DNA from: Chlorokybus atmophyticus
Lineage: Eukaryota > Plantae > Mesostigma and Chlorokybus algae
Assembly: GCA_009103225.1 (NCBI GenBank)
Contig: RHPI01002272.1
Coordinates: 78,905 to 119,707 of the forward strand
Direction of reading: 5' to 3'
DNA length: 40,803 nt
The position numbers and the translations under genes are program-made. Below the pieces are notes generated by a model, which was not told the DNA's origin, made no database searches, and saw nothing but the letters and a program-made list of their open reading frames with translations. This document shows, piece after piece, positions 5,887 through 40,479 of the stretch. Each line of letters starts with the position of its first letter. The stretch's first letter is position 1.

Positions 5887-7134
5887 TCACGGGTTTTGCG
5901 GGGACTTGTCCACCAGACCTGTGCAGGCCGATCCCATCCTTGATAATGCGCGGCTAGGTGGTCGCGCTCGGAGTGTTGCAGCAAGCTGCACTCTTTGACC
6001 ACCATGCTGCAGCGCTTTTGACACAGCCAACCCAAGCATGTCAGAGTCCTTGTGCAGTCTTATGCATGCTACACCAGTCTCAAGCGCCATATTTTGATAT
6101 ACATCGCATTGTTGCAATCGCCGCCGCCGACCTGACATAACGCTCTCCATATCTTTCGCATAATGGTTGTAATAGTCACAGACAAAATGGCAACCGGCAC
6201 AGAATTTGCTATATTTACAGGCGCTATGACACAGAACATTACTCAAAGCCTATGACTGATTACGCGGGCGCCTATTACTCATGTCTGTCCCGGAGGGCCT
6301 ATGCCTCACCGTACTTGCTCTGCATACGCACGACGCCAGTGGTTGAGGGCCATCACGCTGTCGGGGTCGTTGAGCCCCAGCTCCGCTTGCATGTCAGTTT
6401 TTGTAGCAGAGCGTATGTGCGTAAGCACGTGCTTGTAGTCTTGCCGTGATCAGCGCATGTATGTGCAAGTTGGTTTGTGCCAGGTACAGTACATATGTCA
6501 GTCAGTCTATAGTATGTGTTGACGTATCTGCATATGCATGAATTTGTGTATCTGTGTATGCCAGTTAGAACAGCTGTGCGGATCGTGCATGTTTGTCGGG
6601 CTCTTACCCTGATAATGTTAGAGGCAACCATATCCGGCAGCGCCAATATGCCTCACCCCCTACATCTTTGGTGCACATAACAGTGATACAACGGAAGAAT
6701 TGGACATTTGGCATTGGCGGGAATACTGGCAACGACGCCAAGCCGCTGTACTTGCTTCCGTTCTGCTCCTGCTAATGCTGCAAGTCCATTGGCAGATCTG
6801 ACGTTCAAGCACACTTGTTGTGTCCTCTTCCTCCTCCTCCTCTTCCTCCTGCTGCTGCAGCAGAACAGCAACAACCGCAGGAGCCAACTTACTGATAGGG
6901 TTCGACAGCGCCGCCAAGCCGGAGCACCCTGTTCGATCCTGCGTCTCTAGAGCAGTAAGCTCGCCAAAGGACTCCGGCAGCGCCGCCAAGCTGCCGCACC
7001 CGCTCAGGTCCAGCTTTTGCATAGCAGGAAGATTGATCAAGGATCCTGGCAGCACCGCCAAATTGTCGCACTGGCTGAGGTCCAGCTCTTGCAGAACAGC
7101 GAGCTTGCCGAAGAACTCTGGCAGCGCCACCAGC
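5887..7134 (-). pseudogene. 5'-truncated LRR - EP-like fragment (left arm, frameshifted)
   Basis: Inverted copy of 19931-21179 with a 1-bp loss near 6390 (KLTCKRSW vs KLTREAEL). Confidence 0.68.
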
Positions 7135-8977
7135 CTGCAGGCCGTGTGTCTTTTCATGCATGCCAAGCAACAACAGGGTGCTCACCCTTTCTACCTGTAG
7201 GTCAGGCAGAGGAGGCCTGTGTGACAACGGTGCTGTCAGACAGTGTGTGACAAAATAAGGGGCAAAACATCACCACCAATCTTGGCGTCTCATCAATGGT
7301 TTCACACAGCGACCGAAGGGGAATCCCCTGAGTATTACTCAGTACCACTCCGCCACTACGCCTCGTCTCTCCCACCATTTTGTGTACAAGAAGACCCTTG
7401 CACAGATGTAGGCAGTAGCTGTTTAGTGAGAGAGGCAGCCTGTCACATAAGCGGCTGTGCACCGTCCCTCTCGCGCTCTGCTGTGCGTGCGCGCGCATGC
7501 GCATGTATGCGTGTGCTTGCTTGTGCACACATGCAATCTTTGAGATAATCACCTTGATTGACCCTCCCTCTCTGCGCAAGCAAGTGCAGACTCTCACGAC
7601 AGTGCTGCACGTGTGCTTGTATGCGTGTGTGAAACACTGACTCGCACTTCTCCATACCTTTCAACACGACGTACACCATTGTCAAGACGGTGGTACAACC
7701 CCGTTCGCAACGTCCCTGAGCCGCAGGTGAAGGAGGTCCACAAATCGGTGTGACAACCGTCCCGTGGCCGTTATCTACACCAAGCTCCGCACCAACAGTA
7801 GCAACGGTCCCACGCGGGGAGGCCCACATCACCACTGCCACCTGTTGACAGTACATAACACCTGTCCCCAGCTGCCAGCTGCTACCAGTGGTGGCGCTGG
7901 GCAGCAGCAACAACATCCAGGCGAAGAAAGTTCGGTATCAACTGCCTGGGTGGGGTGGGGAGGGGGCATGCCGAGCTTCGGCTGAACCGTTGCGGCAAGG
8001 TAAGATCTGCGCCTACTTCTTCCTCGTCGACCGCAATGAAAGACTGCTACGCCATCCGACGCAAGGTAAACCCAAGGTAAACAATCACCCGTGTCTGTGC
8101 GTGCGCACACGCACGTGCATGTGTATGTCTCTGTCTCTGTGTGGCCTACAATTTACCAGCAGCTAATACCAGTCACACTGGTGCAGTGGCGGTCTCTGTA
8201 ACTATCACACACAAAAGATACCCACCAAATCGTGTTAACCATTGTGTTTGTTGGATAGTCGGAATACACATCATTATGATGAGCGTGCCACCCCTGTGGC
8301 TACCAACAGTTGTCCGCGCGTCAGCTGTTTGTGGTTGCCATATCAGACAGATAGACGGTTGAGACAACTAGTATCTGCATGTAAAGCAAGTGCAAACCTG
8401 CAGGTCACAAGCTGGCAACAACAACAATAACAACAAAGTGTAGAACATGTCAATACATGTCATGCTGAGCTGGCTGAGTCAGGACTCACAATGCAAGCAC
8501 AACGACAATGACAACGACGAACAAGTTACTGCCTCAGCCATCCGTCCATCCACCTCATCTTTCTCATCACCAACATTGCCACCATGTACCTGTGGCCTGC
8601 CCCAACTCCGCGGTCCTCGTCGATGCCGCACGCCCCTCGCCCACGTCTACGTCATCCGGCATGAGAATGAGAAAGCGTGCAGCTACAGCCCCGGTTTTAC
8701 AACCTGCACACGTGACACAATATGTGTTGTGTGTCATTTATGTGTCACCCAAATATGCACGAAAGTTTACAGATTGTGTAGGTAACAGGCACACATACAC
8801 GCACAGTGTGCACTGGATGCGCTGAGTAGAAGAGACTCCCATAGAGTACCAACGCCGCGATTATGTGAAGGTAGTGGGTACGAGTGCAAGACAACCAGTC
8901 CAGGTTGACCAGTGACGATTAGATGTATCGCAAGCCACAAGCGCCTATGATTTACTGTCAGCCATGCCGTGCGCATG

Positions 8978-10191: not shown

Positions 10192-10408
<217 letters not shown>

Positions 10409-10841
10409 AAGATGCTGTAGAGCAGCGCTNACAATCACGCATGCGCGCACGCAGGTAGCTTAAACATACACTCGCGCGCGCACACAGCTGCGACCACCAA
10501 TGCCCGCATGGCACGCAGCCACGCACCTCTTCAGGCATGCATGTCCACACGTACATGCACACAAAGAGAGCCACACAGTGTTGCACACATGCAGGTATAT
10601 GCTCAGGTCTCGAGTATGAGCACATCATGTCAGTGCACATTTTCTGCACATGTTTAGACGCATTCAGACATAAACATACATATACATGCAGACTCAAGTG
10701 GACACATATGCAGGCTCGAAGTTCCCGCGTTCGATATACTACAACCTGCAGTTTAATTACCTAAAGCTTATACAAAGTCCCTTTCGTCTCTTGACAAGGT
10801 GGAGTACACCTTGTCAAAAGGCGAGAGGAAGGCACCGCAAC

Positions 10842-11478
10842 TCATGAGTTCCCCTCTATGGCATTCATTTCGTCCAATGCACGTTGTGTTGAAGACGGTG
10901 CAGCAGTTTTGTTATGTTTCTCATACTGAAGCTCCAAGAACGTGTAGTACTCTGGCCGATTTTCCGCCTCAAGGTAATGTCGATTGCCAATAGGCCACTG
11001 CTTCCACAGCTCGAGCCGGTAGTAGTTGGCAATGTCAATGGGCTCAACCATGAGTCGCATCGTGTTGCCTCTCACCAACCAGTCACTGGACTCGCTGAAA
11101 AAATAGGCAGGCAACATGCCATCCATGTACCACTTGTATGCTATACGCCAGAAGTCCCGTGTAACCCTGTTAGGTTGGTGGAGAGGTCATAACAGTACCG
11201 AGCAAGCATTCAATTGCACTAATCTTAAGCTGCAATGCATGTCGGCGGACCTGCGTGCACGGTCGACCCTCCACAAGCGCTCTGCTTGCGGGCTGCCATC
11301 ACTGCCACTGCCACGATATGCTCTGAAGTCGGCGTAGCAGTCTGCCGAGGTCAGCATAAAGGCTTGTATTGTGTCCATGGCGTCTTGTACCTCATTGCGC
11401 CACATGTTAGCAAACTTTGTTTCATGGCTCCGCTGCGCGGCAATACGCGATTCGACCACTCTCCGTGGCTGCAAAGCG
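10842..11478 (-). CDS. EDS1/PAD4/SAG101-type EP domain (2 exons) of NLR1
   Basis: Spliced sequence AMDTIQAF...CYADFRAY...RARR|VTRDFWRIAYKWYMDGMLPAYFF...WLVRGNTMRLMVEPIDIANYYR...HYLEAENRPEYY matches the EP consensus order (YYDxF ... R..L..FW ... LP..F ... W ... YRxLVEPLDIAxYYR ... Y ... RP.RY). Confidence 0.88.
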
Positions 11479-14400
11479 CTGCAAAAATATAATGCACTAA
11501 GACTATGGATGTCATGGTAGGTCAACACTGCAGGTCAATCAGGCTGCAATGCAAACCTGTGTGACATGGGCATGAAGGCCGGCACACTTCCCAAGTGCCT
11601 GACGAGGGTGTCGTACCCAGCCCAGGGTTCCTATTGCATGAGGATGGCATCGAAAGAGCCACGGAGTTACTAACGCAGACATCATGTAAGACTATTCGGA
11701 AAGGCTGCGTGCATGCTGCAAAGTCTTGCTCGTGCATGAAGGTTTGCATAGCGTGGAGCAAATGCACCACCCCCTTTAAACTTGCCTGCTGATCGCCAAG
11801 GGTGAAGTAGCCAAATTTTCGAATCTGCATTGGTACGTGCTTTCTTTCTCCGGGGGGGCGGAAGATGACTGGAACCAACCACCCGGAAAGATTTCCCTCC
11901 TCATAAACCTTGCATAATATGTTCCCGTACTCGTCGTGCGTCCCCGCGCCCACCCAATCAGCTGCGGTCGGCTGTCTCAATGAAAATCGCTCATAATACT
12001 CATCACAAACCACCACCACCTGAAGCGTTATGTTAACAACCGCAGACCAAAGCATGCATATCTGTCATTCTCGCGTGCTTGCTTACTACATAAGCTATGT
12101 AAGATGGGAATGGTTGATGACAGCCACGATGCGCAAGATGTTCTACACTATCAGAGATGATGTGACCATTGGTACCTTTGTGCCATCCTTGAACATCTGC
12201 CCAATAAAAGCTGGCCATGACTGGTACCCAGTTTTGTCATCGATAATGACATGTACATTATCTTGTTGCAGTTGCTCAGCAAGCCTCCACACACGCTTTG
12301 CGTGAAGCTTGTCAAAATGGCAGTAGCTAATGAATACTGTTAACTTGGTCTCTTTTCCCTGTCCGCTATGTGCCACAGCACGCAAATTATTATAAACATG
12401 GTACAGCATTTGCCGCACAAGAGATTGCGCATGGTTTGCGAAGACAGCCATGCAAAACTTACGCAGTAGCAGCATTGTTGACAGAGGCCTCGGCCTTGGC
12501 CTCCGCGTCCTGCTGGTGCTGCTGCAGCACAGCAGTAGCAGCGTTGTTGACAGCGGCCGCGGCCTTCGCCTTCGCCTCCTGCTGGTGCTGCTGCAGCACA
12601 GCAACAACGGCAGGATGTAGCGCACTGAAGTCTTCTGGCAGCGCCTTCAAATGGAAGCACCCATACAGCTTCAGAATGTGCAGAGCCGTGAGCTTGCCAA
12701 AAGACTTTGGCAGCGCCACCAAACTCGCGCACCAGCTTAGGTCTAGCTCACGCAGAGCAGCGAGCTTACTGAAAGACTCTGGCAGCACCGCCAAGTAGTC
12801 GCACGCGCTCAGGTTCAGCGTTTCTAAGTTGTCCAACTTGCTGAAGGACTCCGGCAGTGCCATCAAGCTGCCGCAGTAGCTCAAGTCAAGCGTCTGCAGG
12901 GCAGCGAGTTTGCCAAAAGACTCCGGCAGCGTCGCCAAGCTTTTGCAATTACTCATGTCCAGCGTTTGTAGGGCAGCAAGGTTGTCAAAGGACTCCGGCA
13001 GTGCCGCCAAGCTGTTGCACTTGCTCAGGTCCAGCGTCTGCAGGGCAGCCAGTTTGCCAAAAGACTTCGGCAGCGCCGCCAAGCTGTTGCACTTGCTCAG
13101 GTCCAGCATTTGTAGGGCAGCGAGGTTGCCGAAAGACTCCGGCAGCGCAGTCAAGTTGAGGCTAATGCTTAGGTCCAGTTTCTGTAAATTTATGAGACCT
13201 CCAACAGACTTGGGTAGCATGCGCAACCCGGTTCGGAAGAGATCTAAAACCCGTAGCATAGTGAGCCCGCCAAGCGCTTCAGGCAGCTCGTTCACTTGAT
13301 AAGAATCACGCAGCACCAGAACTTGCAGCGCCTGGAGGTTTCCTATGGACTCAGCCACCGTCATCGAGGCATCATTATGGACGGCTTCTTCTACTATAAG
13401 GACGACCAGATTTTGGCATGCAGCGGCATTGCACAGGAAAGCGCTCAAGGCTGAATAGCGTGGACGTCTCCATTCGAGATAAACCAGCTCTCTACGGACC
13501 CTGTTGGGAGCGTGAAGTGTGCCATCCCAATCAGTTGTGCCAAGGTCTAGCATGCGGAGGCGAGGCATGAAGGCCATGCCACTTGATGTTTCACTCCAGT
13601 TGAGCCCAGACCAGGACACAGTCTCGGCGTGTTCAGAGCCCTGCATACAACCACAGCATGCCAAATATTAGTAGTTCTCATGTGCTCACTTTCAACAGCC
13701 ATGCTGTAACATACTACCAGAACATAGTGTATTGCACGTTCTTGTATTGGATGCATGCATGCAGCAACCTTCAAGCCAACCAAAAGAACATGAGATGAAG
13801 GAACCAAGCTGGAACGTGGCATATAAGCACCTGTTGAAATACGGCGCTCAACTCCTTGGGCAACCATATGTGCTTGGGCGGGTCTGCTCGATTGGCAATC
13901 ATTCGCCCCATGTCGCGAAGTTGGCCATGTACCGAAAAGCAGATATTGCCTTTGAAACTTAATGAGTATGGCTTGTGCTGGTTTGGTCTCCATTTCAAGC
14001 GAATAAGGGACAACTCCACTAGGGTGTACACTTTTAGCGACGCGCGGTTCCCCCACGCCGGAAGCAGGAAGTCTTTATTCTTCCCCAATGCAAAGCAGCA
14101 AATGTCCAGAAACACTCGCTGATATGTGGGCGTTAAAGAATTGTAGCTAAGCTCCAGCGTTTTCCACAACCGGTCATCTTTGGTACGTTTAAGCCCCTCA
14201 GCCTGTTGCAATTGATCCAGTGCAACTTTCCAAAACTGCACATCATTGCTGCTGCGCTTGCCCAGAAAGGAGCCCACGACTTCAAGTGCGAGCGGCAGGC
14301 CGTCGCACGCCTGGATGAAATCCTTGACGTTGGGCTCCAACTCCTCAGGCACTGGATGCGAGCCGAAGGCAAAGTGGCAAAACAGTTTTCTAGCGGGCTG

Positions 14401-15819
14401 AGCGTCCAGCTCTTCCACCTCCTCCACCAAAATATGCTTGTCATGCCCCCTCAATAAGCCGTGCTCGCGAGATGTCACCAGCACACGGCTTCCTTCACCC
14501 AGCAGAGGGTTGGCGGTCTCCAGATTGAAAGGACCGAGCAGAGCTTCTTTTTGAACCTCGTCCCAGATGTCATCAACAAAGAGCAGCACCTTCCGCCCTT
14601 GCAAATGGTTCTGGAGAAGCATCTTTGCTTGATCAATCGCCTTGGCTGCATCACGAAGTCCCTTATTCCCAGTAAGCGCTTCAAGCATATCCTGTTGCAG
14701 TTTAACCAATTCTCCAGTGTCTTGACGCTCTTTCCCGACCTCTACAAAGCAGCAGCTGCGAGGAAAAGTGCTGCACAGCTCGTTGTAAACCGCCTTGGCA
14801 AGTGTAGTCTTTCCGACGCCGCCCATGCCCCAAAGCCCCAGCACGACGACCTTGCTTACAGAGGCAGCAGCACTCAGCTTCTTGAGGACAGCTTCAACTC
14901 GCCGGTCAATGTCCACTGGGTATTTGGCGACATACAACGCATGGCGGTCCAACGTTTTCAGCACGTCGTCCACCACTTTGTTTGCTAAAGCAACTGGGTC
15001 ACTGACAAACAACAGCCAACGTTAGGAAACCACACATGACAACCTGAGCAGAGATGTTCTCCAGCGACAACTCAACTCACCCATTCTCCAGCCTCAGGCC
15101 CGTTGTTCCAAATGCTTTATCCAGCGCAACATCGTATGCAGGTTTGTTCTGGATATACTGCTGCTTGCCACTCAGGCATGCGCTGAAAACAAATCATACT
15201 CGTAACCAGGAACATGGCTACCGGACTGACAAGTGACAGAGTCTAGAAACTGTGCTCACCATTCAATACTTTGCTGAATCTCGGCTTTCAGGCTGTCAAA
15301 GTCATCATCGAAGAAGATGGGCTTAACGATGTTTGCTGAATCCTCCATCATGATGCGCAGCTCTTCCAGGCAGCACCACGAGTCCCCATAGTTACGCGAC
15401 AGAACAGGCATTTTGATGCGAGCGGTGTGTACATTGGCGGTGATCACAGTCCAGGCGTTGTCCCCGGGCTGCAAGCTGAGTTCATCTACGAAGCAGGTCA
15501 AGCTCACTTGTTTGAAGTAATCATGCAGATAATAAACGAAGTTTTTCTTAACGTCCCCTCTATGGCTCAAGAAAATGTCACTGCCAGCGTGAGGATTGGT
15601 CTTCGACAGAACGCAACTGTCTGTGATGTGCAACGTGTGAGTTGACTTGTCAGCGGACTTACAGTGACTGTATTTCATGGTACTTGACGGCTCAAAACCT
15701 GCAACCTTCTTGCTTTGCAAAGAATATGTTACAAGACACATGCGCAGCATATGCACCATCAAAGGCACGCTTGGGTTGTTTGCAAGCTTACCGTCCAGGT
15801 TTGCATTTGGGGCAGACAT
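10842..15819 (-). CDS. TIR-NB-ARC-LRR-SEFIR-EP (EDS1 EP-domain) NLR, apparently intact, 10 exons
   Basis: Manual splice model: 15819-15792, 15620-15260, 15182-15081, 15001-13831, 13640-12463, 12365-12176, 12019-11786, 11630-11557, 11478-11251, 11166-10842. Total 3891 nt = 1297 codons including stop. All introns are GT-AG except one GC-AG, and phases match throughout. The start codon is the least certain part; further 5' exons are possible. Confidence 0.88.
11557..12365 (-). CDS. SEFIR-type TIR-like domain (3 exons) of NLR1
   Basis: Spliced sequence LTVFISYCHFDKLHAKRVWRLAEQLQQDNVHVIIDD...KDGTK|VVVVCDEYYERF...GAGTHDEYGNILCKVY...LVPVIF...HVPMQIRKFGYFTLGDQQ|EPWAGYDTLVRHL follows the SEFIR/TIR_2 pattern (VFISY-H, LA-L, DV-ID, V-VC-Y, G-G--E, IPV-F, P-L, GY--L-R-L). 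Confidence 0.78.
12463..13640 (-). CDS. LRR exon of NLR1 (about 10 repeats of 24 aa) plus Ala/Gln linker
   Basis: Repeated LxxLDLSxCxSLxxLPESFGxL units (72-bp period), preceded by ELVYLEW-type post-NB sequence and ending at the donor GC|gtaagt. Confidence 0.97.
13831..15001 (-). CDS. NB-ARC exon of NLR1
   Basis: P-loop GMGGVGKTT, kinase-2 LLFVDDIW, RNBS-B SRVLVTSR, CDGLPLAL, RNBS-D FLDICCF, and an MHD-position variant VHGQLRDMG. Confidence 0.97.
15081..15620 (-). CDS. N-terminal TIR domain exons of NLR1
   Basis: DIFLSHRG-DVKKNFVYYLHDYF...CFVDELSLQPG...MPVLSRNYGDSWCCLEELRIM...KPIFFD. The Glu at the usual TIR NADase catalytic position (WCxxEL) is retained. Confidence 0.93.
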
Positions 15820-16635: not shown

Positions 16636-18339
16636 CAAAACCAGATCAGTGAATATGTCGAACGGAGTCGAACCTGTCGCCCATCATCCATGTCAGGATT
16701 TTTCACGTGCTTCATGCATATGTCAGGAGACGCCTAGCCCCTAGCAGTGCTATGCCCATGCACAGGTGTCATTGAACCCGCGTTGTATACCTCGTATGGT
16801 ATGGCTCCCGAACCCTTACCATGCTAGGCGTCCTACCAATGATAGCCCACCATGTCATGTCTGCACATGCATCAAGCAAACTAGGCCTTAATGCGGGGAG
16901 GAAGTGGCGGGCTCCAGCCTGGGCCGGAGGTTCAGGCGCATGTCGAAGGTTTGATGTTCTACGATATGAATGATAAGACGTGACCAATTCATGCGCTCAA
17001 GCTTGTTTCCTTGATTTGCCGGCGGCAGGGCCTGGAGTGGTGCGGTGCGGTGCGGTGAGGCGTTGGCGGGCGGGCTGCAGTGTGTCCCCGCCGCCGGGCT
17101 CGGGGAAGGACTTTCTCCTGGATGGGAAGGAGAGCAGCGCAGCAGGCGCCAGCTGTCCGTCTTCAGCGCCATGCTGGGCGGCGCTGCTTAGCAAACGCCA
17201 ACGGCGCAGCCGGGAGGATTAACGTAGATTGCTACAGCTGCAGGCACGGCTTTCCGCAGGTGCTCTACAATGTCTCGCCATTGCTGCCTGCCGTCTGCCC
17301 TCATAATGCTTGTCTAGCTAAACCAACTTCACAGCACGTAAATCTGCTGGTACCGCACAAGTACCACAGGCTGATCAGCGCCTGTGTGTGTTGTTGTGAA
17401 TGCATGCATGCACACACGTGCGCGCTCACTCACTCATACACACACATGTCTTCACAGACATGGACATATGTGGTTCTTGCAGCCATTCAGTGCTTTAGCT
17501 CCTTGCACGAAGCAGCTAAACTGACGGCAAGCATGCTCTGGTATCTAAGTACGTGCACTTCTTCTGTTGTCAATGTCGTTGGGGCCGTACTGCTGGTGGC
17601 AGTAACAGTAATGGCTTCGCGGTATGATGAAGTGGCAGCGCAAGAGATTGTTGTGTACGGTGTAAACTGTGGAACAGATGAACGACAGTCAAAAGTACAG
17701 TCTGCTTCTGTTGTATTGGACGCAACTCACAACGCTTGAACGCCNTCCTCACCCGCCGCGGGAAGTTAAGCTATGGTCAGCAAACGTATACAAAGGAACA
17801 GTGCTCAGCATAGTTGACGCAGTATGTAGATACACTCTCTCCTCGCTGACCATATCCTCTATGGTTTGTTTAACATGTATACACAAGCGTACCACTCTCG
17901 TCTGCGACGCAGCAACTGTTTTGTTTGCGAGCATTTGCCCTGTTTGTTGCGCATGCGCATGCATGGAACGGGCCTTTAATGTGCACACTAGACGTTGTTG
18001 CATGTCAAAGCTTGCCGTGCCAGGTGCTCATCATATATACACCGCTTCTTACCACCAGTAGATACGCTTTGTCGTTTTCTGCAGCTTCACGCCACTTGGT
18101 CAGCGCTGGCATGGCTATCGCTGAACTAAGTGAACTTTGACAGGACTTGGGCGCTCCGCACCCATGAGGCTGGTCTGCACCGCGCTTGGCTTAGCAGCAG
18201 AAGCAGAAGCGCTTGCGCTTGAGATGGGCGGGCTGATGTTACGGAGGCTTCCTGCAGTGCTAACTGCGGCTGCATCCATTGTCACTGGTGCCGGCTACTG
18301 GAACCACACACATCTCAATCGTGGTAGTGCTGAACTCTA

Positions 18340-18690
18340 TCTGACCTCGGCCGCTCCTAACAATGCTGCTATTGCGTAAGTTTCAACTACAGCCTTCTTT
18401 GCATAGCATGTACAAGAATTCTACTCCAACAAATGATGTGACATGCTTTTGACATTTTGCAAGTGCTGTGGCAAATAGCGGACAAAGACAAGAGGCAACA
18501 GGGGCACGGTCCACGACGCCAGAAGCAAAGTCGACAATGTCTACAAGCTACTGCCAGCTCAACATTCGACACAACAGGCAGAGGCTTGTTGAGCAACTGC
18601 AATGGGACGTCATTGTGGACTACAAGAATAATTGCCAGTCATGGCCGGTGTTTATTGGGCAGATGTTAAACGATGGCACAGAGGTACCAG
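18340..18690 (+). pseudogene. Relic of NLR linker end, intron and SEFIR exon 1
   Basis: aatgctgctattgc|gtaagt donor as in NLR1/NLR2, then EAKSTMSTSYCQ...LVEQLQWDVIVDYK..SWPVFIGQMLNDGTE|gtacc; opposite strand to NLR1. Confidence 0.8.
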
Positions 18691-19930
18691 TTGTAACATC
18701 ATTGCTTGTAATGAACGCGCATGGTTGTCATCAACATATCACAGCCTCTTGCATCTCATGTAGTAGCTATAGTAAGGCACGCCTTAAAGACAGCAATGCA
18801 GTGTGACTGGTTTGTATATGTACTCCTGACGGTTCAGGTCATTGGGTCAGGATGACCTGAAAGGTTATCCTGACCTGGTCCTTTCACATATGCAAGCCAG
18901 TGCGAAGTAAATTCTGACTGAGCAGTCTATCCGTGTAAACCACTCACTGCAGGCTTGTGGTCAGACACCCTCACTAGGCGCCCATTGCTTGCAATAAATC
19001 TAATCGTCACTGGTTGATCTGGACTGGATACCTTGCTCCCTGTACCCACTACCTCCAAAAACTCGCGCCGTTTGTACTCTATGGGAGTCTCTTCTACTCA
19101 GCGCATCCAGTACACACTGTGTGCGTGTTATCTACATAATCTGTAAACTTTCGTGTACATGGCTTGGGTGGCAGGGTACACATAAATTGCGTCACGTGTG
19201 CAAGTTGTAGGAGCGGGGTTGTAGCTGCACTGTGCCAGTGGTAATGTGGGCCTCCCCGCGTGGGACCGATGCTACTGTTGGTGCGGAGCTTGGTGTAGAT
19301 AGCGGCCATGGGACGGTTGTCACACCGATTTGTGGAGCTCCTCTCCCCTGGGGCTCAGGGACGTTGCAAACGGGGTTGTACCACCGTCTTGACAATGGTG
19401 TACGTCGTGTTGAAGGTATGGAGAATTGTCAGTCAGTGTTTTACACACGCCTAAAAGCACACGTGCAGCACTGTCATGAGAGTCTGCACTTGCTTGCGCA
19501 GAGAGGGAGTTAATCAAGGTCATGATTATCTCAAAGATTGCATGCGTGCACAAGCAAACACACGCATACATGCGCATGCGCACGCACAGCAGAGCGCGAG
19601 AGGGACGGTGCACAGCCTCTTATGTGACAGACTGCCTCTCTCACTAAGCAGATACTGCCCACATCTGTGCAAGGGTCCTCTTGTACACAAAATTGTGTGA
19701 GAGACGAGGTACAGCGGCGGAGTAGTACTCAGTAACACTCAGGGGACTCCCCTTCAGTCGCTATGTGAAACCATTGACGCCAAGATTGGTGGTGCTGTTT
19801 TGCCCCTTGTTTTGTCACACACTGTCTAACAGCACCGTTGTCACACAGGCCTCCTCTGCCTGACCTACAGGTAGAAAGGGTGAGCACCCTGTTGTTGCTT
19901 GGCATGCATGAAAAGACACACGGCTTGCAG

Positions 19931-21179
19931 GCTGGTGGCGCTGCCAAAGTTCTTCGGCAAGCTCGCTGTTCTGCAAGAGCTGGACCTCAGCCAGTGCGAC
20001 AGTTTGGCGGTGCTGCCAGGATCCTTGATCAATCTTCCTGCTATGCAAAAGCTGGACCTGAGCGGGTGCGGCAGCTTGGCGGCGCTGCCGGAGTCCTTTG
20101 GCGAGCTTACTGCTCTAGAGACGCAGGATCGAACAGGGTGCTCCGGCTTGGCGGCGCTGTCGAAACCTATCAGTAAGTTGGCTCCTGCGGTTGTTGCTGT
20201 TCTGCTGCAGCAGGAGGAGGAAGAGGAGGAGGAGGAGGAGGACACAACAAGTGTGCTTGAACGTCAGATCTGCCAATGGACTTGCAGCATTAGCAGGAGC
20301 AGAACGGAAGCAAGTACAGCGGCTTGACGTCGTTGCCAGTATTCCCGCCAATGCCAAATGCCCAATTCTTCCGTTGTATCACTGTTATGTGCACCAAAGA
20401 TGTAGGGGGTGAGGCATATTGGCGCTGCCGGATATGGTTGCCTCTAACATTATCAGGGTAAGAGCCCGACAAACATGCACGATCCGCACAGCTGTTCTAA
20501 CTGGCATACACAGATACACAAATTCATGCATATGCAGATACATCAACACAAATTGTAGACTGACTGACATATGTGTTGTACCTGGCACAAACCAACTTGC
20601 ACATACACGCGCTGATCACGGCAAGACTACAAGCACGTGCTTGCGCACATACGCTCTGCTACAAAAACTGACACGCGAAGCGGAGCTGGGGCTCAACGAC
20701 CCCGACAGCGTGATGGCCCTCAACCACTGGCGTCGTGCGTATGCAGAGCAAGTACGGTAAGGCATAGGCCCTCCGGGACAGACATGAGTAATAGGCGCCC
20801 GCGTAATCAGTCATAGGCTTTGAGTAATGTTCTGTGTCATAGCGCCTGTAAATATAGCAAATTCTGTGCCGGTTGCCATTTTGTCTGTGACTATTACAAC
20901 CATTATGCGAAAGATATGGAGAGCGTTATGTCAGGTCGGCGGCGGCGATTGCAACAATGCGATGTATATCAAAATATGGCGCTTGAGACTGGTGTAGCAT
21001 GCACAAGACTGCACAAGGACTCTGACATGCTTGGGTTGGCTGTATCAAGAGCGCTGCAGCATGGTGGTCAAAGAGTGCAGCTTGCTGCAACACTCCGAGC
21101 GCGACCACCTAGCCGCGCATTATCAAGGATGGGATCGGCCTGCACAGGTCTGGTGGACAAGTCCCCGCAAAACCCGTGA
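19931..21179 (+). pseudogene. 5'-truncated NLR fragment: LRR, poly-Glu linker, then a divergent EP-like C-terminal domain (right arm)
   Basis: LRRs (LQELDLSQCDSLAVLP, LDLSGCGSLAALPESFGEL) are followed by phase-consistent exons 20288-20408, 20559-20756 and 20843-21179, open to a stop. No TIR or NB-ARC sequence upstream. Confidence 0.7.
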
Positions 21180-26725: not shown

Positions 26726-26966
26726 NNNNNNNNNNNNNNNNNNNNNNNNNNNNNNNNNNNNNNNNNNNNNNNNNNNNNNNNNNNNNNNNNNNNNNNNNNN
26801 NNNNNNNNNNNNNNNNNNNNNNNNNNNNNNNNNNNNNNNNNNNNNNNNNNNNNNNNNNNNNNNNNNNNNNNNNNNNNNNNNNNNNNNNNNNNNNNNNNNN
26901 NNNNNNNNNNNNNNNNNNNNNNNNNNNNNNNNNNNNNNNNNNNNNNNNNNNNNNNNNNNNNNNNNN
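26726..26966. other. Assembly gap (N)
   Basis: Run of n. Confidence 1.
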
Positions 26967-31469: not shown

Positions 31470-31812
31470 ATGGCTGCGTATCAAGGGGAACAGTATGACG
31501 TCTTTCTCTGTCATCGGGGTCCGGATACAAAGAAACATTTCAGCGTGTGGCTGAAGCGCGAGCTTGAAGGGAAGAAGCTACAGGTGTTCCTTGCTGATAG
31601 GTCAATGGGTACGGGAGATCATGCGTCTGAAACAATGAACGCAGCCATAAAGACGGCAACATGCGATCTTGTGGTGCTGTCTCGGGGGTTCTTTGTTAGC
31701 AGATGGTGCATGCAAGAGCTCCGCAACTTCCTGGATTGAGGAAACTGCACACCAGTCTGGTACGATGTCACCCCGGATGACATAAACGCAGAGAAGATCA
31801 GGAACAAAGAAG
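31470..31812 (+). pseudogene. TIR-domain gene of a different subfamily with an in-frame nonsense codon (NLR3 5' remnant)
   Basis: MAAYQGEQYDVFLCHRGPDTKKHFSVWL...VVLSRGFFVSRWCMQELRNFLD*GNCTPVWYDVTPDD, with TGA at 31737-31739, then a donor at 31812. I found no NB-ARC exon downstream. Confidence 0.88.
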
Positions 31813-33135: not shown

Positions 33136-33296
33136 CACGCCTGGATAATATCGTTGGCGATTGGCTCCAACTCCACAGGCACGGTAAGCAATTTGCCAGG
33201 TTCAGTGAAGGCATAATTGTTGAAAAGTTCTCTAGCCGGCTGATCGTCGAGCAGCAGCACCTCCTCCACCAATGTATGCTTCACATGCCCCTTCAG
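33136..33296 (-). repeat. Near-exact about 160-bp copy of NLR2 NB-ARC sequence
   Basis: Identical by eye to about 38809-38968; starts immediately after an N at 33135. Confidence 0.85.
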
Positions 33297-34479: not shown

Positions 34480-34609
<130 letters not shown>

Positions 34610-35041: not shown

Positions 35042-35686
35042 TCATGAGTTCCCTTCGATGGCATTCAATTCGTCCAATGCGCGTTGTGTTGAAGATGGTG
35101 CAGCAGTTCTGTTATGTTTCTCATACTGCAGCTCCAAGAACGTGTAGTACTCTGGCCGATTGTCTGCCTCAAGGTAATGTCGATTGCCAACAGGCCACTG
35201 CTTCCACAGCTCGAGCCGATAGTAGTTGGCAATGTCAATCGGCTCAACCATCAGGCGGAAAGTGTCGCCTCTTGCACACCAGAGATTGGACTTGTTGAAA
35301 AAGAAAGCAGGCAACATGCCTTCCATGTAACGATTGTATGCTGAACGCCAGAAGTCCCATAGAACCCTGTCATGTCAGGTTGGTCACCGCATGATGTGGA
35401 GGTCATACCAGTACTTAGCAAGCCGTAAACTGCATTGAACTCAAACTGCAATGCATGTCGTCTGACCTGCATGCGTGTTTGACTGATTTCAAGCGCTCTG
35501 CTTGCGAGCTGTCATCACCGTCACGATATGCTCTGAAGTCGGCGTAGTAGTCTGCAGAAGTCTGCGCAAAGGCTTGTATCGTTTCCATGGCAGCTTGTAC
35601 CTCGTTGCGCAACTTGTCAGTAAATTCTGTTTCATGTTTTCGCTGCTCGGCAATACGCGAACCGCCTACTGTCGGTGATTCCAAAG
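35042..35686 (-). pseudogene. EP-domain exons of NLR2
   Basis: EVQAAMETIQAF...YYADFRAY...KHACR|VLWDFWRSAYNRYMEGMLPAFFF...GDTFRLMVEPIDIANYYRLELWKQWPVGNRHYLEADNRPEYY; intron 35466-35367. Confidence 0.87.
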
Positions 35687-38600
35687 CTGCAAGGGTAAAT
35701 GCATTGAGATTACGCGTGTCATGTGGTAGGTCAACCCTGCATGTCAGATGCCAATCAGGCCGCAATGCAAACCTGGGCTGCATGGGCTGCATGAAGGGCG
35801 GCTTCTGCTGCTCGGTGATACGCGAACCGCCCACTGTCGGTGACTCTGAAGCGCTGCAAAGGTAAATACACTGAGACTACGCATGTCATGTGGTAGATCA
35901 ACACTGCACGCTGAATGCCAATCAGGCCGCAATGCAAACCTGGGCTGCATGAAGGGCTGAACACTTCCCAAGTGTTTGACGAGGGTGTCGTACCCAACCC
36001 AGGTTCCCTATTGCACGCAGAACCAGAAGACCCGCGGAATTACTTAAGCACACATCATTTAAAACTATTTTGACTAGGTGCATGCTGCAAGGTCTCGCTC
36101 GTTCATTGAGAAGTGTGCACAGCTTGGAGCAAATGCACTACACTCTTTGTAGTGTTTGAAACTTGCCTGCTGATCGCCAAGGGTAAAGCAGTTAAAATTT
36201 CCGGATCTGTGCAGGTACGTGCTTTCTGTCTCCAGGGGCCTGGAAGACGACTGGAACCAACCAGCCAGAGCGGTTCTGCTCTTCGTAGACCTTGGTTAGT
36301 ATGTTCGTGTACTCGTCGTGCGTTCCTGCTCCCAATCTGTCAGCTGCAGTCGGCGTTTTCAGTGAAACCGTTCGTAATGCTCGTCACAAGCAACGATCAC
36401 CTGCAATGTCACGAGTACAACCAGCAAACCGATCAATGCATGGCTGTTGTGCAGGCGTGCCTGCTGACGGCATGAGATGCGAGAAGTTGGGATTGTCTGA
36501 TGACGGCGACCACGCGCAAGGTGTTCTACACTTTGGAGACGATGTGACAACAAGTACCTTTGTGCCATCGTTTGAACATTTGACCAATAAGAATCGGCCA
36601 TGACTGGTTTCCAATTTTGTAGTCGACAATGACGTCTATATTGTCTTGTTGCAGTTGCTCAGCAAGCCTCCGCACACGCTCTGCATGATGCTTGTCAAAC
36701 TGGCAGTAGCTGATAAACACAGTCAACTTGGCCTCTGACGCCGCGGACGCTGCCTTTGTAGCCTCTTGTCCCTGTCCGCTATGTGCCACAGCACATGCAA
36801 ATAACCATAAGCATGGTACCTGTAGTACAACACCTGCCGCACATGGCATGTGTGCATGATTTGCAACGAAAGCTATAGCAAAACTTACGCAATAGCAGCA
36901 TGGTTGACAGCCGCTGCCGCCTCCACCTCCGCCTTCGTCTCCCGCAGGTGCTGCTGCAGCACAGCAACAACAGCAGGATCCAACATACTGCAAGATTTTG
37001 GCAGTGCCTTCAAGTGGGAGCACCCGTCCAGTTTCAGCTTTCGCAGTGCAGAGAGCTTGCCAAAGGACTCCGGCAGCACCGCCAAACTGTCGCACCAGCT
37101 TAGGTCCAGCTCACGCAGAGCAGTGAGCTTGCTGAAGGACTCTCCCAGCACTGCCAAGCGGTCGCACGCGCTCAGATTCAGCGTTTGCAGATTGTTCAAC
37201 TCGCCGAGGGACTCCCGCAGTGCCTCTAGGCTGCCGCAATAGCTCAAGTCAAGCGTTTGCAGGGCAACGAGACTACCAAAGGACTCCGGCAGCTCCGCCA
37301 AACTGTTGCAATTGGTCAGGTCCAGCATCTGCAGGGCAGTGAGTTTGCCAAAGTACTTTGGCAATGCCGCCAATCTTTCGCAACTTCTCAGGTCCAGCGT
37401 TTGCAGCATAGCGAGGTTGCCAAAGGATTCCGGCAGCTTCACCAAGCTGAGGCTATTGCTCAGGTCTAGCATTTGCAGCATAGCGAGGTTGCCAAAGGAC
37501 TCCGGCAGCTTCGCCAAGCTGTTGCACTTGCTCAGGTCCAGCATTTACAGGGCAGGTTGCCAAAGGACTCCGGCAGTGCCGCCAGGCTGCCGCAATAGCT
37601 CAAGTCAAGCGTTTGCAGGGCCACGAGACTACCAAAGGACTTCGGCAGCTCCTCCAAGCTGAGGCATTACCTTAAGTCCAATTCCTGAAGGTGCATGAGA
37701 TCTCCTACAGACTCGGGTAGCTTGTGCGAACCGGTTCTAGAGAAAACTAGAGTCTGTAGCATAGCGAGCCCGCCAAGCGCTTCAGGCACATTCATCAGAG
37801 GTTCACAGCCCCGCAGCACCAGGATTTGCAGCGCCTTGAGGTTCCCAATGGACTCAGTCGCCACCATTGAGACATCAACATGAACGATTTTTTCTACAAT
37901 TAGAACCACTAATGTAGTGCACGCAGCGGCATTATACAAGAAACTGCTCAAGGCGGAACAGCGTGGACGTCTCCACTCGAGATAGACCAGCTCTCTACGG
38001 ACCCTATTGGGAGCGTGAAGTGTGCCATCCCAATCAGTTGTGCCAAGGTCTAGCATGCGGAGGCGAGGCATGAAGGCCATGCCACGTAATGTTTCGCTCC
38101 AGTTGAGTCCAGCCCAGGACACAGTCTCGGCTTGTTCAGAGCCCTGCATACAACAACAGCATGCCTAAGATCAGCAGTTCTCACGCGCTCACTTCCAACA
38201 GCCATGCTGTCACATACTCCTGAAACACCGTGGGTTGCACATTTTTGCTGGACCCATGCATGCAACCTTCACAAGCCAGTCAAAAGGACATGAGATGAAG
38301 GAACCAAGGTGGAACGTGGCATACATGCACCTCTTGAAGTAATGTGCTCGATTCCTTTGGCAACCAGATGTGCTTGGGCGGGTTGGCTCGACTGGCAATC
38401 ATTCGCCCCATGTCGCGAAGTTGGCCATGTATCGAAAAGCAGATATTGCCTTGTGCACCCAATGAGAATGGCTTGTACTGGTCTTGTCTCCATACCAAGC
38501 GAATAAGGGACAATTCCACCAGGGTATTCACTTATAGTGCCGCGCCCTTGCCGCACGCTGGAAGCAGAAACTTTTCATTTTTCCCAAATGCGAAGCAGCA

Positions 38601-40479
38601 GATGTCCAGAAACACTCGCTGATAAGTGGGCTCTAGGTAATTGTAGCTGAGCTCGAGCGTTTTCCACAACCGGTTATCCTTGGTACCTTCAAGCCCCTCT
38701 GCCTTTTGCAATTGATCCAGTGCGTCTTTCCAAAACTGCACATCACTGTTGCTGCTGCGCTTGTGAAGAAAGGATCCCACGACCTCGAGCGCGAGTGGCA
38801 GGCCTTGACACGCCTGGATAATATCGTTGGCGATTGGCTCCAACTCCACAGGCACGGTAAGCAATTTGCCAGGTTCAGTGAAGGCATAATTGTTGAAAAG
38901 TTCTCTAGCCGGCTGATCGTCGAGCAGCAGCACCTCCTCCACCAATGTATGCTTCACATGCCCCTTCAATAACTGGTGATTACGAGAGGTCACCAGCACA
39001 CGACTGCCTAACAACACGATATTGAGTCAGTCGTGTAGTGTCAGCCTTATTGTGTCAGTCTCACTGTGTAGGCAATGATCCACTGGTAATGTGCCTTACC
39101 GGTACCCAGCAGAGGGCTGTCTCCCCAAAAATTGCAACAACCGAGGAGGGCTTCTTTCTGATCCTCGCTCCAGACGTCATCAACAAAAAGCAGCACCTTC
39201 TGCCCTTGCAAGCGGTTCTTGAGAATTGCCATTCCATGAATGGAGGTCAATGCCTCTACAGGCTCACTCCCCAGCTTTTTGAAGCATTTGTTGTTGCAGC
39301 TGTACCAGCTTCCCGTTCTCTTTACATGCATCTTTTTCGACCTCTACAAAGCAGCAGCTGCCTGAAAATTTGCTGTACAGGCTGTTGTAAACTGCTATTG
39401 CAAGTGCAGTCTTTCCGATACCGCCCATGCCATGAAGACCCAGCATGATGACCTTGCTTCCAGCGGCAGCAGCATTCAACTTGTTGAGTACAGCTTCAAC
39501 GCGCCTGTCAATGTCCACTGGATGTTTGGCGACTTCCAAGCGGGGGGGTAGCCTTCTCAGCACGCCTGACACCACTGCATCTACTAAAGCAGTCCTGGTA
39601 CTGCCAACAAAGAGCAGATGTTGAAAACATTGCCGCAATCATGATGACAACGGCATCACAACACGAACCAGTGACAACCCAACTCACGGTTATTGATTGA
39701 CCCTCCAGCCCGGTCTGTTAAACGCCTCCTCTACCGCCGTGCGATATTCAAGTTTGTTTTGGACGTATAGGGTCTCACCGCGCTGGCATGCGCTGAAAAC
39801 ACACAACATGCTGGTCATGATGGAAATCCTGCTGATTGCTGGCGAGTCTAGGAGAAAAGGTAAACTATACTGCCAGTACAGTGTACCCACCTGTGAATAC
39901 TTTCCAGGATTATGGCTTTGAGATCGTCAAAGTCATCATAGAAGATAGGCATGATTTGATGTTTCCTGGACTCTCCAACATAATGCGCAGCTCCTCTAGG
40001 CAGTAGCAGGATTTCCCGTATCGACGAGAAAGGACAGGCATCTTGATGCGAGCGGACCGCACATTGGCAATGATGACATCCCAAGCTCCGTTGGTTTCCC
40101 CGGGCTGCAAGCTGAGCTCGTCCACGAAGCAGGTGATTCCAACTCTGTCAAGCATGCGATGCAGATAGTCAACAAGATTGTTCTTGACGTCAGGCCCTCT
40201 ATGGCTCAGGAAAACGTCGCAGGGAGAGTGAGGGATAGTCTTTGACAGCGGCATATTGTCTCCGTCTGCAACACGCAAGTTGACTGGTCAGTGGGCTCAT
40301 GGAGCATTATTTGCTGGAGGGAAATGCCGTCTGGCGATCAGCTGGTGAATAAGGGAGCTGCACAGGATCGATACAAACCGCAACGCACACCAACATGTCA
40401 AGCACATTTGAGTAGTAGTCGTAGTGTTGGTCAACAACCTACCGTTGAGGTTTGCATTGGGGGCCAAAGGTTTGTTCAT
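35042..40479 (-). pseudogene. Paralogous TIR-NB-ARC-LRR-SEFIR-EP NLR pseudogene (NLR2)
   Basis: Same exon order and splice sites as NLR1. Lesions: +2 frameshift near 39955, TAA at 39690-39692, +1 frameshift near 39278, AAA>TAA at 38532-38534, a stop at 37667-37669 followed by frameshifts, indels in the SEFIR exons (near 36570, 36362 and 36195), and a 2-bp loss at the EP exon 1 acceptor (near 35686). Confidence 0.9.

Follow-up and report, generated by a model that had tools for sequence, protein, structure and literature searches.

We describe an apparently intact gene of the streptophyte alga Chlorokybus atmophyticus in which a TIR-NB-ARC-leucine-rich repeat (LRR) receptor (TNL) is followed, within the same spliced reading frame, by a SEFIR-type domain and an EP domain homologous to that of EDS1, PAD4 and SAG101. 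The gene lies on the minus strand, at positions 10842-15819, of a 40,803-nucleotide stretch of contig RHPI01002272.1 (assembly GCA_009103225.1, positions 78,905 to 119,707), which was analyzed as a whole and is referred to below as the window. It has a new domain architecture assembled from known parts. The five-domain arrangement is probably real, and a single chain carrying all five domains is likely. Chlorokybus stands at the base of the land-plant lineage, and the EP domain has so far been treated as a hallmark of the seed-plant EDS1 proteins. A robust, full-fold EP domain in such an early-diverging streptophyte alga makes the origin of the EDS1 pathway testable.

Gene structure

The exon chain was built from a listing of open reading frames (ORFs) and by direct reading of the sequence, using long ORFs, short gaps and canonical splice signals. 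The resulting frame comprised ten exons, with 3,891 nt after splicing and 1,296 codons, starting with the ATG at 15819-15817 and carrying the terminal TGA at 10844-10842 as its sole stop; the span contains zero N. All introns were of the GT-AG type, except for intron 7, which is a consensus GC-AG intron (CAG^GCAAGT, with the caret marking the splice site). The first-pass annotation of this DNA had proposed ten exons in consistent phase encoding the five domains in this order, which was borne out for this gene, and its start and end coordinates were exactly those of the ATG and the stop codon.

The splice sites were compared with the public gene model of the locus (P0001, JGI Chlat1 Chrsp114S01646), with the paralogue P0002 (Chrsp103S01043), which encodes a free SEFIR-EP protein, and with RNA contigs. 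Since the contigs are transcripts of a relative, 80-90% identical, they support the positions of the junctions and not the expression of this locus. The features of the gene are listed below.

10842..15819, minus strand: whole coding span of the TIR-NB-ARC-LRR-SEFIR-EP gene (spliced frame, 1,296 codons)
15792..15819, minus strand: exon 1, start codon, 9 codons + 1 nt (ATG 15819; donor G^GTAAGC; exon 1/2 joint 15607>15791 in the relative's RNA)
15260..15620, minus strand: exon 2, TIR core with the catalytic-Glu motif CLEEL (Pfam TIR_2 1e-11, TIR 4.6e-10)
15081..15182, minus strand: exon 3, C-terminal part of the TIR (phase-consistent splice sites; exon 2/3 joint 15185>15290 in the relative's RNA; inside the moss TNL alignment)
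13831..15001, minus strand: exon 4, NB-ARC with GMGGVGKT, LLFVDDIW, GLPLAL and HGQLRDMG (Pfam NB-ARC 7.5e-34)
12463..13640, minus strand: exon 5, NL-linker followed by ~11 24-residue LRRs and a Gln/Ala-rich linker (Pfam LRR_14 1.8e-35, LRR_8 3e-26; 72-nt tandem units)
12463..12603, minus strand: duplicated 69-nt unit that encodes AVLQQHQQ...VNNAATA and ends at the exon-5 donor (Tandem Repeats Finder period 69, 2.0 copies, 91% match)
12176..12365, minus strand: exon 6, N-terminal half of the SEFIR/TIR_2-type domain, LTVFISYCHFD... (TIR_2 21.6 bits, SEFIR 18 bits; junction with exon 5 as in P0001)
11786..12019, minus strand: exon 7, C-terminal half of the SEFIR/TIR_2-type domain, GC donor (about 77% identity to P0002; joints 12007>12174 and 11627>11784 in the relative's RNA)
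11557..11630, minus strand: exon 8, linker micro-exon of 24 codons, EPWAGYDTLVRHLGSVPAFMPMSH (present in P0001 and P0002; joints on both sides in the relative's RNA)
11251..11478, minus strand: exon 9, first long EP helices (helices 25-63 and 83-110 of the 203-residue model, with a predicted local distance difference test score, pLDDT, >90; in the region aligned with EDS1/PAD4)
10842..11166, minus strand: exon 10, EP core, VEPIDIANYYR...HYLE..NRP..Y, and stop (Pfam EDS1_EP 37.9 bits; exon 9/10 joint in the relative's RNA)

A nine-exon model that joined 11786 straight to 11468 was replaced, the micro-exon at 11630-11557 being shown by P0001, P0002 and the relative's RNA. Since the pLDDT was low in exon 8, this exon was taken as a linker.

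The EP domain

The EP tail is truly homologous to the EP domain of EDS1, PAD4 and SAG101, and this identity is secure. The first-pass annotation had offered the EP assignment of 10842-11478 as a claim open to refutation, and the Pfam profile, the profile-versus-PDB search and the fold comparison all pointed to EDS1/PAD4/SAG101 only. The ORF of exon 10 matched Pfam EDS1_EP (PF18117) with 37.9 bits against a cut-off of 23.1. When exon 10 alone was compared with all PDB sequences using phmmer, the 13 best matches were EDS1, PAD4 and SAG101, with which it aligned on FW...EP(L/I)DIANYYR...Y...RP..Y. A HMMER scan, run exhaustively over 1.84 billion representative proteins, yielded 56 EP relatives. 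The algal EP profile had 56 rows, consisting of the HMMER matches plus the paralogue P0058, with the repeat-protein matches P0017 and P0055 omitted. Against the PDB, this profile found AtPAD4 (7e-24), OsEDS1 (1.4e-22), AtEDS1 (6e-15) and SAG101 (5e-9), and the next sequence was at 0.015.

AlphaFold2 modeling of the last 203 residues (P0001:478-680, 56-row alignment) gave an all-helical bundle with a pLDDT of 89.8 and a predicted template modeling score (pTM) of 0.82. In a Foldseek search with this model, the top 24 PDB matches all belonged to the EDS1 family (query TM-score, TMq, up to 0.67), after which the E-value jumped to 0.7. For 14 EDS1-family entries, VIA-align returned Z-scores of 15.1-19.6, with 153-177 residues aligned at root-mean-square deviations of 1.5-2.8 A, while the best unrelated chain had a Z-score of 7.0.

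In the 56 aligned algal EPs, the E, P, D, A and Y of EPxDIANYYR, one Tyr, and the Arg matching AtEDS1 R490 were near-invariant, and the main gene keeps this Arg. The helical-bundle fold (Z up to 19.6) and the core EP(L/I)DIANYYR ... Y ... RP..Y, including the R490-equivalent Arg, are thus shared with EDS1, PAD4 and SAG101. By contrast, the EP of the main gene is fused to a receptor of the nucleotide-binding leucine-rich repeat type (NLR), is shorter (about 180 residues, with the Pfam match covering profile positions ~16-122 of 211), and belongs to a protein without the lipase-like domain and hence without the LLIF helix. Because this domain is missing and the N-terminal part is TIR-NB-ARC-LRR, the protein is an EP bearer only and not a strict member of the EDS1 family.

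The SEFIR-type domain

The second TIR-fold domain is divided between exons 6 and 7, and the half-domain of exon 6 alone scored 21.6 bits with TIR_2 and 18.0 bits with SEFIR in Pfam, both below the cut-off. The complete domain is uninterrupted in P0002, the closest paralogue, and in P0058, to both of which the domain of the main gene is ~77% identical (for P0002, as counted from the alignment). These complete domains exceeded the cut-offs (SEFIR 23 bits, TIR_2 28 bits), with 41.0 and 37.7 bits for P0002 and 38.1 and 35.8 bits for P0058. The best PDB sequence match was 5y8f/5y8e, deposited as 'Sefir domain protein' (E 0.035), and the nearest ESM-Atlas clusters were SEFIR/TIR_2 families (score 0.95, 182 shared features). 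The assignment as a SEFIR-type domain (SEFIR PF08357 / TIR_2 PF13676) is therefore a well-supported prediction. The pattern VFISY...(D/E)VI(V/L)D...KV(I/V)V.CD..Y is common to the Chlorokybus domain and known SEFIR domains (PDB 5y8f/5y8e; metazoan IL-17R/Act1), whereas the Chlorokybus domain occupies a C-terminal place in an NLR and invariably has an EP domain after it. A search with the SEFIR region returned Chlorokybus paralogues only as sequence relatives.

The TIR-NB-ARC-LRR receptor half

Residues 24-895 of the spliced protein formed one BLASTP high-scoring segment pair (HSP) with full-length moss TNLs (E 1.9e-105), so the first 895 residues are those of an ordinary TNL. The TIR exon ORF scored 45.8 bits with TIR_2 and 40 bits with TIR in Pfam, and its best PDB matches were the TIRs of the plant TNLs flax L6/L7, ROQ1, RPP1, RPV1, SNC1, RUN1 and RPS4 (3e-9). 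Its SWCCLEEL aligned with STWCLEEL of ROQ1, which indicates that the catalytic Glu is kept in the N-terminal TIR; the enzyme role that the first-pass annotation had suggested for this TIR is plausible from its motif. The NB-ARC exon scored 117.5 bits in Pfam, with GMGGVGKT at residue 222, LLFVDDIW at 303 and GLPLAL at 398, and with HGQLRDMG at the MHD position. Its closest relatives were the NB-ARCs of seed-plant and Ginkgo TNLs, at 30-35% identity. The LRR exon scored 122.8 bits with LRR_14.

The receptor half aligns with seed-plant and moss TNLs (ROQ1, RPP1, L6; Ceratodon purpureus P0120 and P0068) from one end to the other, from the TIR and its catalytic-Glu motif through the motifs of the NB-ARC to NL-linker and LRRs, and by analogy the same oligomerization-dependent TIR NADase working would be expected of it. 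It differs from them in what follows the LRRs: in Chlorokybus, a Gln/Ala linker leads into the SEFIR-type domain, and the EP domain forms the C-terminus. C-JID gave no match at E<=1 in the exon-5 ORF with Pfam; a post-LRR C-JID is typical of angiosperm TNLs but not universal. In seed plants, the EP-bearing proteins are encoded by separate genes.

Splice junctions and the public gene model

The relative's RNA contigs contained joints at homologous positions for six of the nine junctions (exons 1/2, 2/3, 6/7, 7/8, 8/9 and 9/10), and the 7/8 joint confirmed the micro-exon together with the GC donor at 11786. One contig of 1,541 nt carried TIR and NB-ARC together, and another of 763 nt carried SEFIR and EP together. 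The junction between NB-ARC and LRR (exons 4/5) rests on homology to full-length NLRs, five of which spanned it in single HSPs. The junction between LRR and SEFIR (exons 5/6) rests on the public model P0001 and on the conserved ...NAA(T/I)A^GQG in P0002, which uses ...VNHAAIA^GQG, and in the paralogous copy B described below.

P0001 (680 aa) is identical to the C-terminal exon of the main gene. It covers LRR-SEFIR-EP only (window 13575-10842) and is mis-spliced, using a donor at 11909 by which half of the SEFIR domain is skipped. Most matches in a search with P0001 were to its LRRs, and EP was carried by Chlorokybus proteins alone. With the NB-ARC exon as query, no annotated protein of 215-680 aa proved identical. 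The public Chlorokybus protein set thus lacks the full five-domain architecture. Since the public model is devoid of the TIR-NB-ARC half, the locus would not be classed as an NLR from predicted proteins, and annotation-based NLR surveys could miss it.

Free EP proteins of Chlorokybus

In addition to P0002, the genome contains the free SEFIR-EP genes P0058 (Chrsp235S03603) and P0175, the short EP proteins P0023, P0025 (Chrsp114S01653) and P0040, and P0004 (Chrsp5S06985), an EP-TIR-EP protein with a plant-type TIR. All seven exceeded the EDS1_EP cut-off. The free SEFIR-EP genes share the module, the micro-exon and the splice junctions with the tail of the main gene at ~75-85% identity, but free SEFIR-EP and EP proteins have a hydrophobic N-terminal segment in place of TIR-NB-ARC-LRR. 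This segment, of about 19 residues and with a Kyte-Doolittle mean of 1.7-2.5, was found in P0002, P0058, P0004, P0023, P0025 and P0040, and it is so strongly hydrophobic that the free proteins are probably membrane-anchored.

The paralogous copy B

The window contains one paralogue of the main gene.

35042..40479, minus strand: copy B, pseudogene with the same domain order and intron positions (stops, frameshifts, 92-nt insertion)

The alignment of copy B with the main gene ran from end to end, through the introns as well, with 70-88% nucleotide identity. Because the homology extends throughout, the fusion predates the duplication. The first-pass annotation had described copy B as a paralogue of the same architecture. 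The domain order and intron positions are indeed shared, but the reading frame is broken, which makes the copy a pseudogene. In-frame stops lie at 38534-38532, in the NB-ARC region opposite K487, and at 37669-37667, in the LRR. The NB-ARC exon contains an insertion of 92 nt, exon 6 has gained 1 nt, and exon 7 has lost 1 nt, which gives rise to a TGA; this stretch is free of N. The last exon of copy B still scored 35.4 bits with EDS1_EP, and the ratio of nonsynonymous to synonymous substitution (dN/dS) between the EP exons of the two copies was 0.40. At 35642-35951, copy B also carries a 167-nt tandem duplication around the intron before the first EP exon, by which the acceptor region is doubled.

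Proposed mechanism and alternative explanations

We propose that the LRRs would sense a ligand and that the NB-ARC would oligomerize the receptor. Oligomerization would assemble the N-terminal TIRs into an NAD+-cleaving enzyme and simultaneously cluster the SEFIR-EP tails, which would act as the receptor's built-in output adaptor. The tails could then draw in the free SEFIR-EP and EP proteins, which are probably anchored in a membrane, via homotypic SEFIR-SEFIR and/or EP-EP contacts, and the EP bundle may also bind a nucleotide made by the TIR. We infer such a built-in output, with TIR-to-EP signaling coupled in cis, from the domain content of the gene, and we give it a probability of roughly 0.4. 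A linkage of TIR-fold and EP domains recurs in Chlorokybus in P0002, P0058 and P0004, and EP has been physically joined to TIR-fold domains several times in evolution. 'Rosetta-stone' fusions of this kind usually mark proteins that work together.

Several observations weigh against a signaling tail on a single chain. No exon of the main gene matched Lipase_3 in Pfam, and the lipase-like domain drives EDS1 heterodimerization in seed plants. In the EP of the main gene, Leu matches AtEDS1 H476 and Tyr matches R493 (RPEYY), and only 18 of the 56 algal EPs have Arg at the R493 position. Both residues contact TIR products in seed plants (bioRxiv 10.1101/2022.05.02.490369). The AlphaFold2 model of P0002 (6-row alignment) showed the alternating beta/alpha pattern with a pLDDT of only 40.6. 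The first-pass annotation had asked for confirmation of one transcript across LRR-SEFIR-EP; the relative's RNA supplied the joints from SEFIR to EP, but no exon 4/5 or 5/6 joint was seen in its contigs. Reading through the exon-5 donor leads to a stop one codon on, so that a plain TNL isoform would be possible if intron 5 were retained. The start Met of Chrsp114S01646 lies inside the LRR exon, leaving TIR and NB-ARC outside this model. Finally, the sole paralogue in the window is dead.

Some of these points would equally suit a tail that is an integrated decoy, copied from the free SEFIR-EP proteins as bait for pathogen effectors that attack them; such a tail would switch on the TNL without itself transmitting the signal. 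This is the leading alternative, and we regard it as somewhat less likely than the built-in output. The tail lies C-terminal to the LRRs, the typical place of integrated domains, and is ~75-85% identical to the stand-alone proteins P0002, P0058 and P0175, as expected for a host target duplicated into an NLR. Neither H476 nor R493, the known positions of ligand contact, is conserved, and the neighborhood of the gene, a group of clustered NLR fragments, is the usual one for fast-evolving sensors. NLRs with integrated domains such as RRS1-WRKY and RGA5-HMA likewise carry, after the LRRs, an additional domain closely copied from free host proteins. However, the piece integrated in the Chlorokybus gene itself consists of immune-signaling folds (TIR-fold + EP), and it could therefore be output rather than bait. 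TIR-fold and EP also occur together in the non-NLR protein P0004, which indicates a working partnership rather than bait alone, and the window yielded no paired executor NLR. The tail keeps the SEFIR core and every near-invariant EP residue, with a dN/dS of 0.40 for the EP exon, but this argues only weakly against a decoy, since decoys can be conserved too. The suggestion of the first-pass annotation that the gene could be an ancestral form of TIR-EDS1 signaling is not established, because the integrated-decoy explanation fits the data about equally.

The locus might also make two products, namely a plain TNL ending at the TAA at 12461-12459 with intron 5 kept, and a separate or alternative SEFIR-EP protein, with the full fusion being rare or an artifact of modeling. 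We consider this improbable. The position of the TAA one codon past the exon-5 donor would suit it, as would the in-frame ATGs upstream of exon 6, which lie in the final part of exon 5 and within intron 5 (ORF 12143-12625), the occurrence of SEFIR-EP as separate genes elsewhere in the genome, the lack of an exon 5/6 joint in the relative's RNA, and the public model without TIR-NB-ARC. On the other hand, P0001 splices LRR to SEFIR exactly from 12463 to 12365, the ...NAA(T/I)A^GQG junction is also found in P0002, and the arrangement is kept in copy B. The LRR and SEFIR parts are only 97 nt apart, which leaves no room for a promoter, and P0001, whose start falls within the LRR exon, is therefore a truncated model and no evidence for a separate gene. 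It is more improbable still that the main gene is a silent relic, intact by chance and no longer expressed or used. The locus was absent from the RNA runs examined, and copy B and the fragments at 6660-7166, 18137-18806, 19899-20327 and 31497-31793 are degenerate; against this, the 3.9-kb ten-exon frame is intact where copy B, at 70-88% identity, has at least two stops and several frameshifts, and related transcripts are abundant in a relative's RNA.

Literature record and evolutionary meaning

No paper describing a TIR-NB-ARC-LRR-SEFIR-EP fusion was found, nor any text naming both SEFIR and EDS1, in a search whose coverage ended short of subscription journals; within the same coverage, the statement of the first-pass annotation that it knew of no described protein with this architecture stands. 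Current papers place the origin of the EDS1 family and its EP domain in seed plants and describe plants other than these as being without EDS1. TIR signaling in plants and algae lacking EDS1 is explicitly treated as an open question in papers from 2022 to 2026. According to one 2026 preprint, the record for green algae is limited to 'short EP-like sequences'. Chlorokybus TIR domains have been assayed in Nicotiana, and no link between them and EP was found in the literature searched.

TIR enzymes and EP domains may already have worked together in streptophyte algae long before seed plants, with the partnership hard-wired in Chlorokybus both in the five-domain chain and in EP-TIR-EP proteins, and the EDS1 family could have arisen later by re-packaging an EP receiver module of ancient origin. 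We offer this as a tentative scenario that may well prove wrong; the lipase-like and EP ORFs on the contigs L003 and L006, described below, would be consistent with it.

NLR debris in the window

Apart from the main gene and copy B, the window carries further NLR remnants, and it is an NLR cluster with much decay. On the plus strand at 18137-18806, head-to-head with the main gene and ~2.3 kb from its start, lies a degenerate P0002-type gene with a hydrophobic N-terminus (...LPAVLTAAASIVTGAGYW...), followed by a decayed SEFIR exon without VFISY. Two near-mirror LRR fragments with 72-nt units, at 6660-7166 (minus strand) and 19899-20327 (plus strand), both end in the PAVVAVL linker motif and represent inverted NLR debris. 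Downstream of the latter, no EP signal was found in the ORFs tested, and a call of 'LRR + divergent EP-like' at 19931-21179 was rejected after neither tblastn nor Pfam gave an EP signal on these ORFs. A TIR-like fragment (36% identity) was observed at 31497-31793 on the plus strand and an NB-ARC-like fragment (57% identity) at 33141-33296 on the minus strand. Long (TC)n/(CT)n microsatellites at 10194-10406 and 34481-34609 occupy the equivalent place downstream of the main gene and copy B; a single N lies beside each of them, at 10430 and 34610, and larger gaps are found at 2219-2756 and 26726-26966.

EP relatives in other genomes

A protein of the chlorophyte Elliptochloris had already been named automatically as 'EDS1 EP domain-containing protein'. 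In Elliptochloris bilobata GCA_040144335.1 (L002:1-10628), a 142-aa EP gene and a 673-aa Lipase_3 gene were observed at a distance of two genes and on opposite strands, which may be a coincidence.

The metagenomic contig ctg25145 of ENA ERZ26867466 (L003:7020-16657) showed, on one strand and in this order, lipase-like ORFs, an EP ORF, a TIR, a STAND P-loop and a 906-aa TPR ORF. The PDB matches of the lipase-like ORFs were the lipase-like domains of EDS1/PAD4 only (best 1.7e-9; Lipase_3 27.2 bits), and the EP ORF (38.8 bits), of the algal type, shared 45% identity with the Chlorokybus EP. The arrangement has the appearance of an EDS1-like lipase+EP gene beside, or fused to, a TIR-NB-TPR gene. 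In a contig of Logan SRR12899024 (L006:879-3226), a Lipase_3 ORF with an intact GHSLGG nucleophile elbow was located upstream of a same-strand EP ORF, at a distance of ~1.7 kb, possibly a second lipase-EP gene with an algal-type EP. Together, these two contigs hint that the pairing of lipase and EP is older than thought. In GCA_030012885.1 (JASCQV010002970.1, L001:1712-6975), an EP ORF with 60.5 bits in Pfam was accompanied by a TIR/TIR_2 ORF 4 kb away and a CBM_14 ORF nearby.

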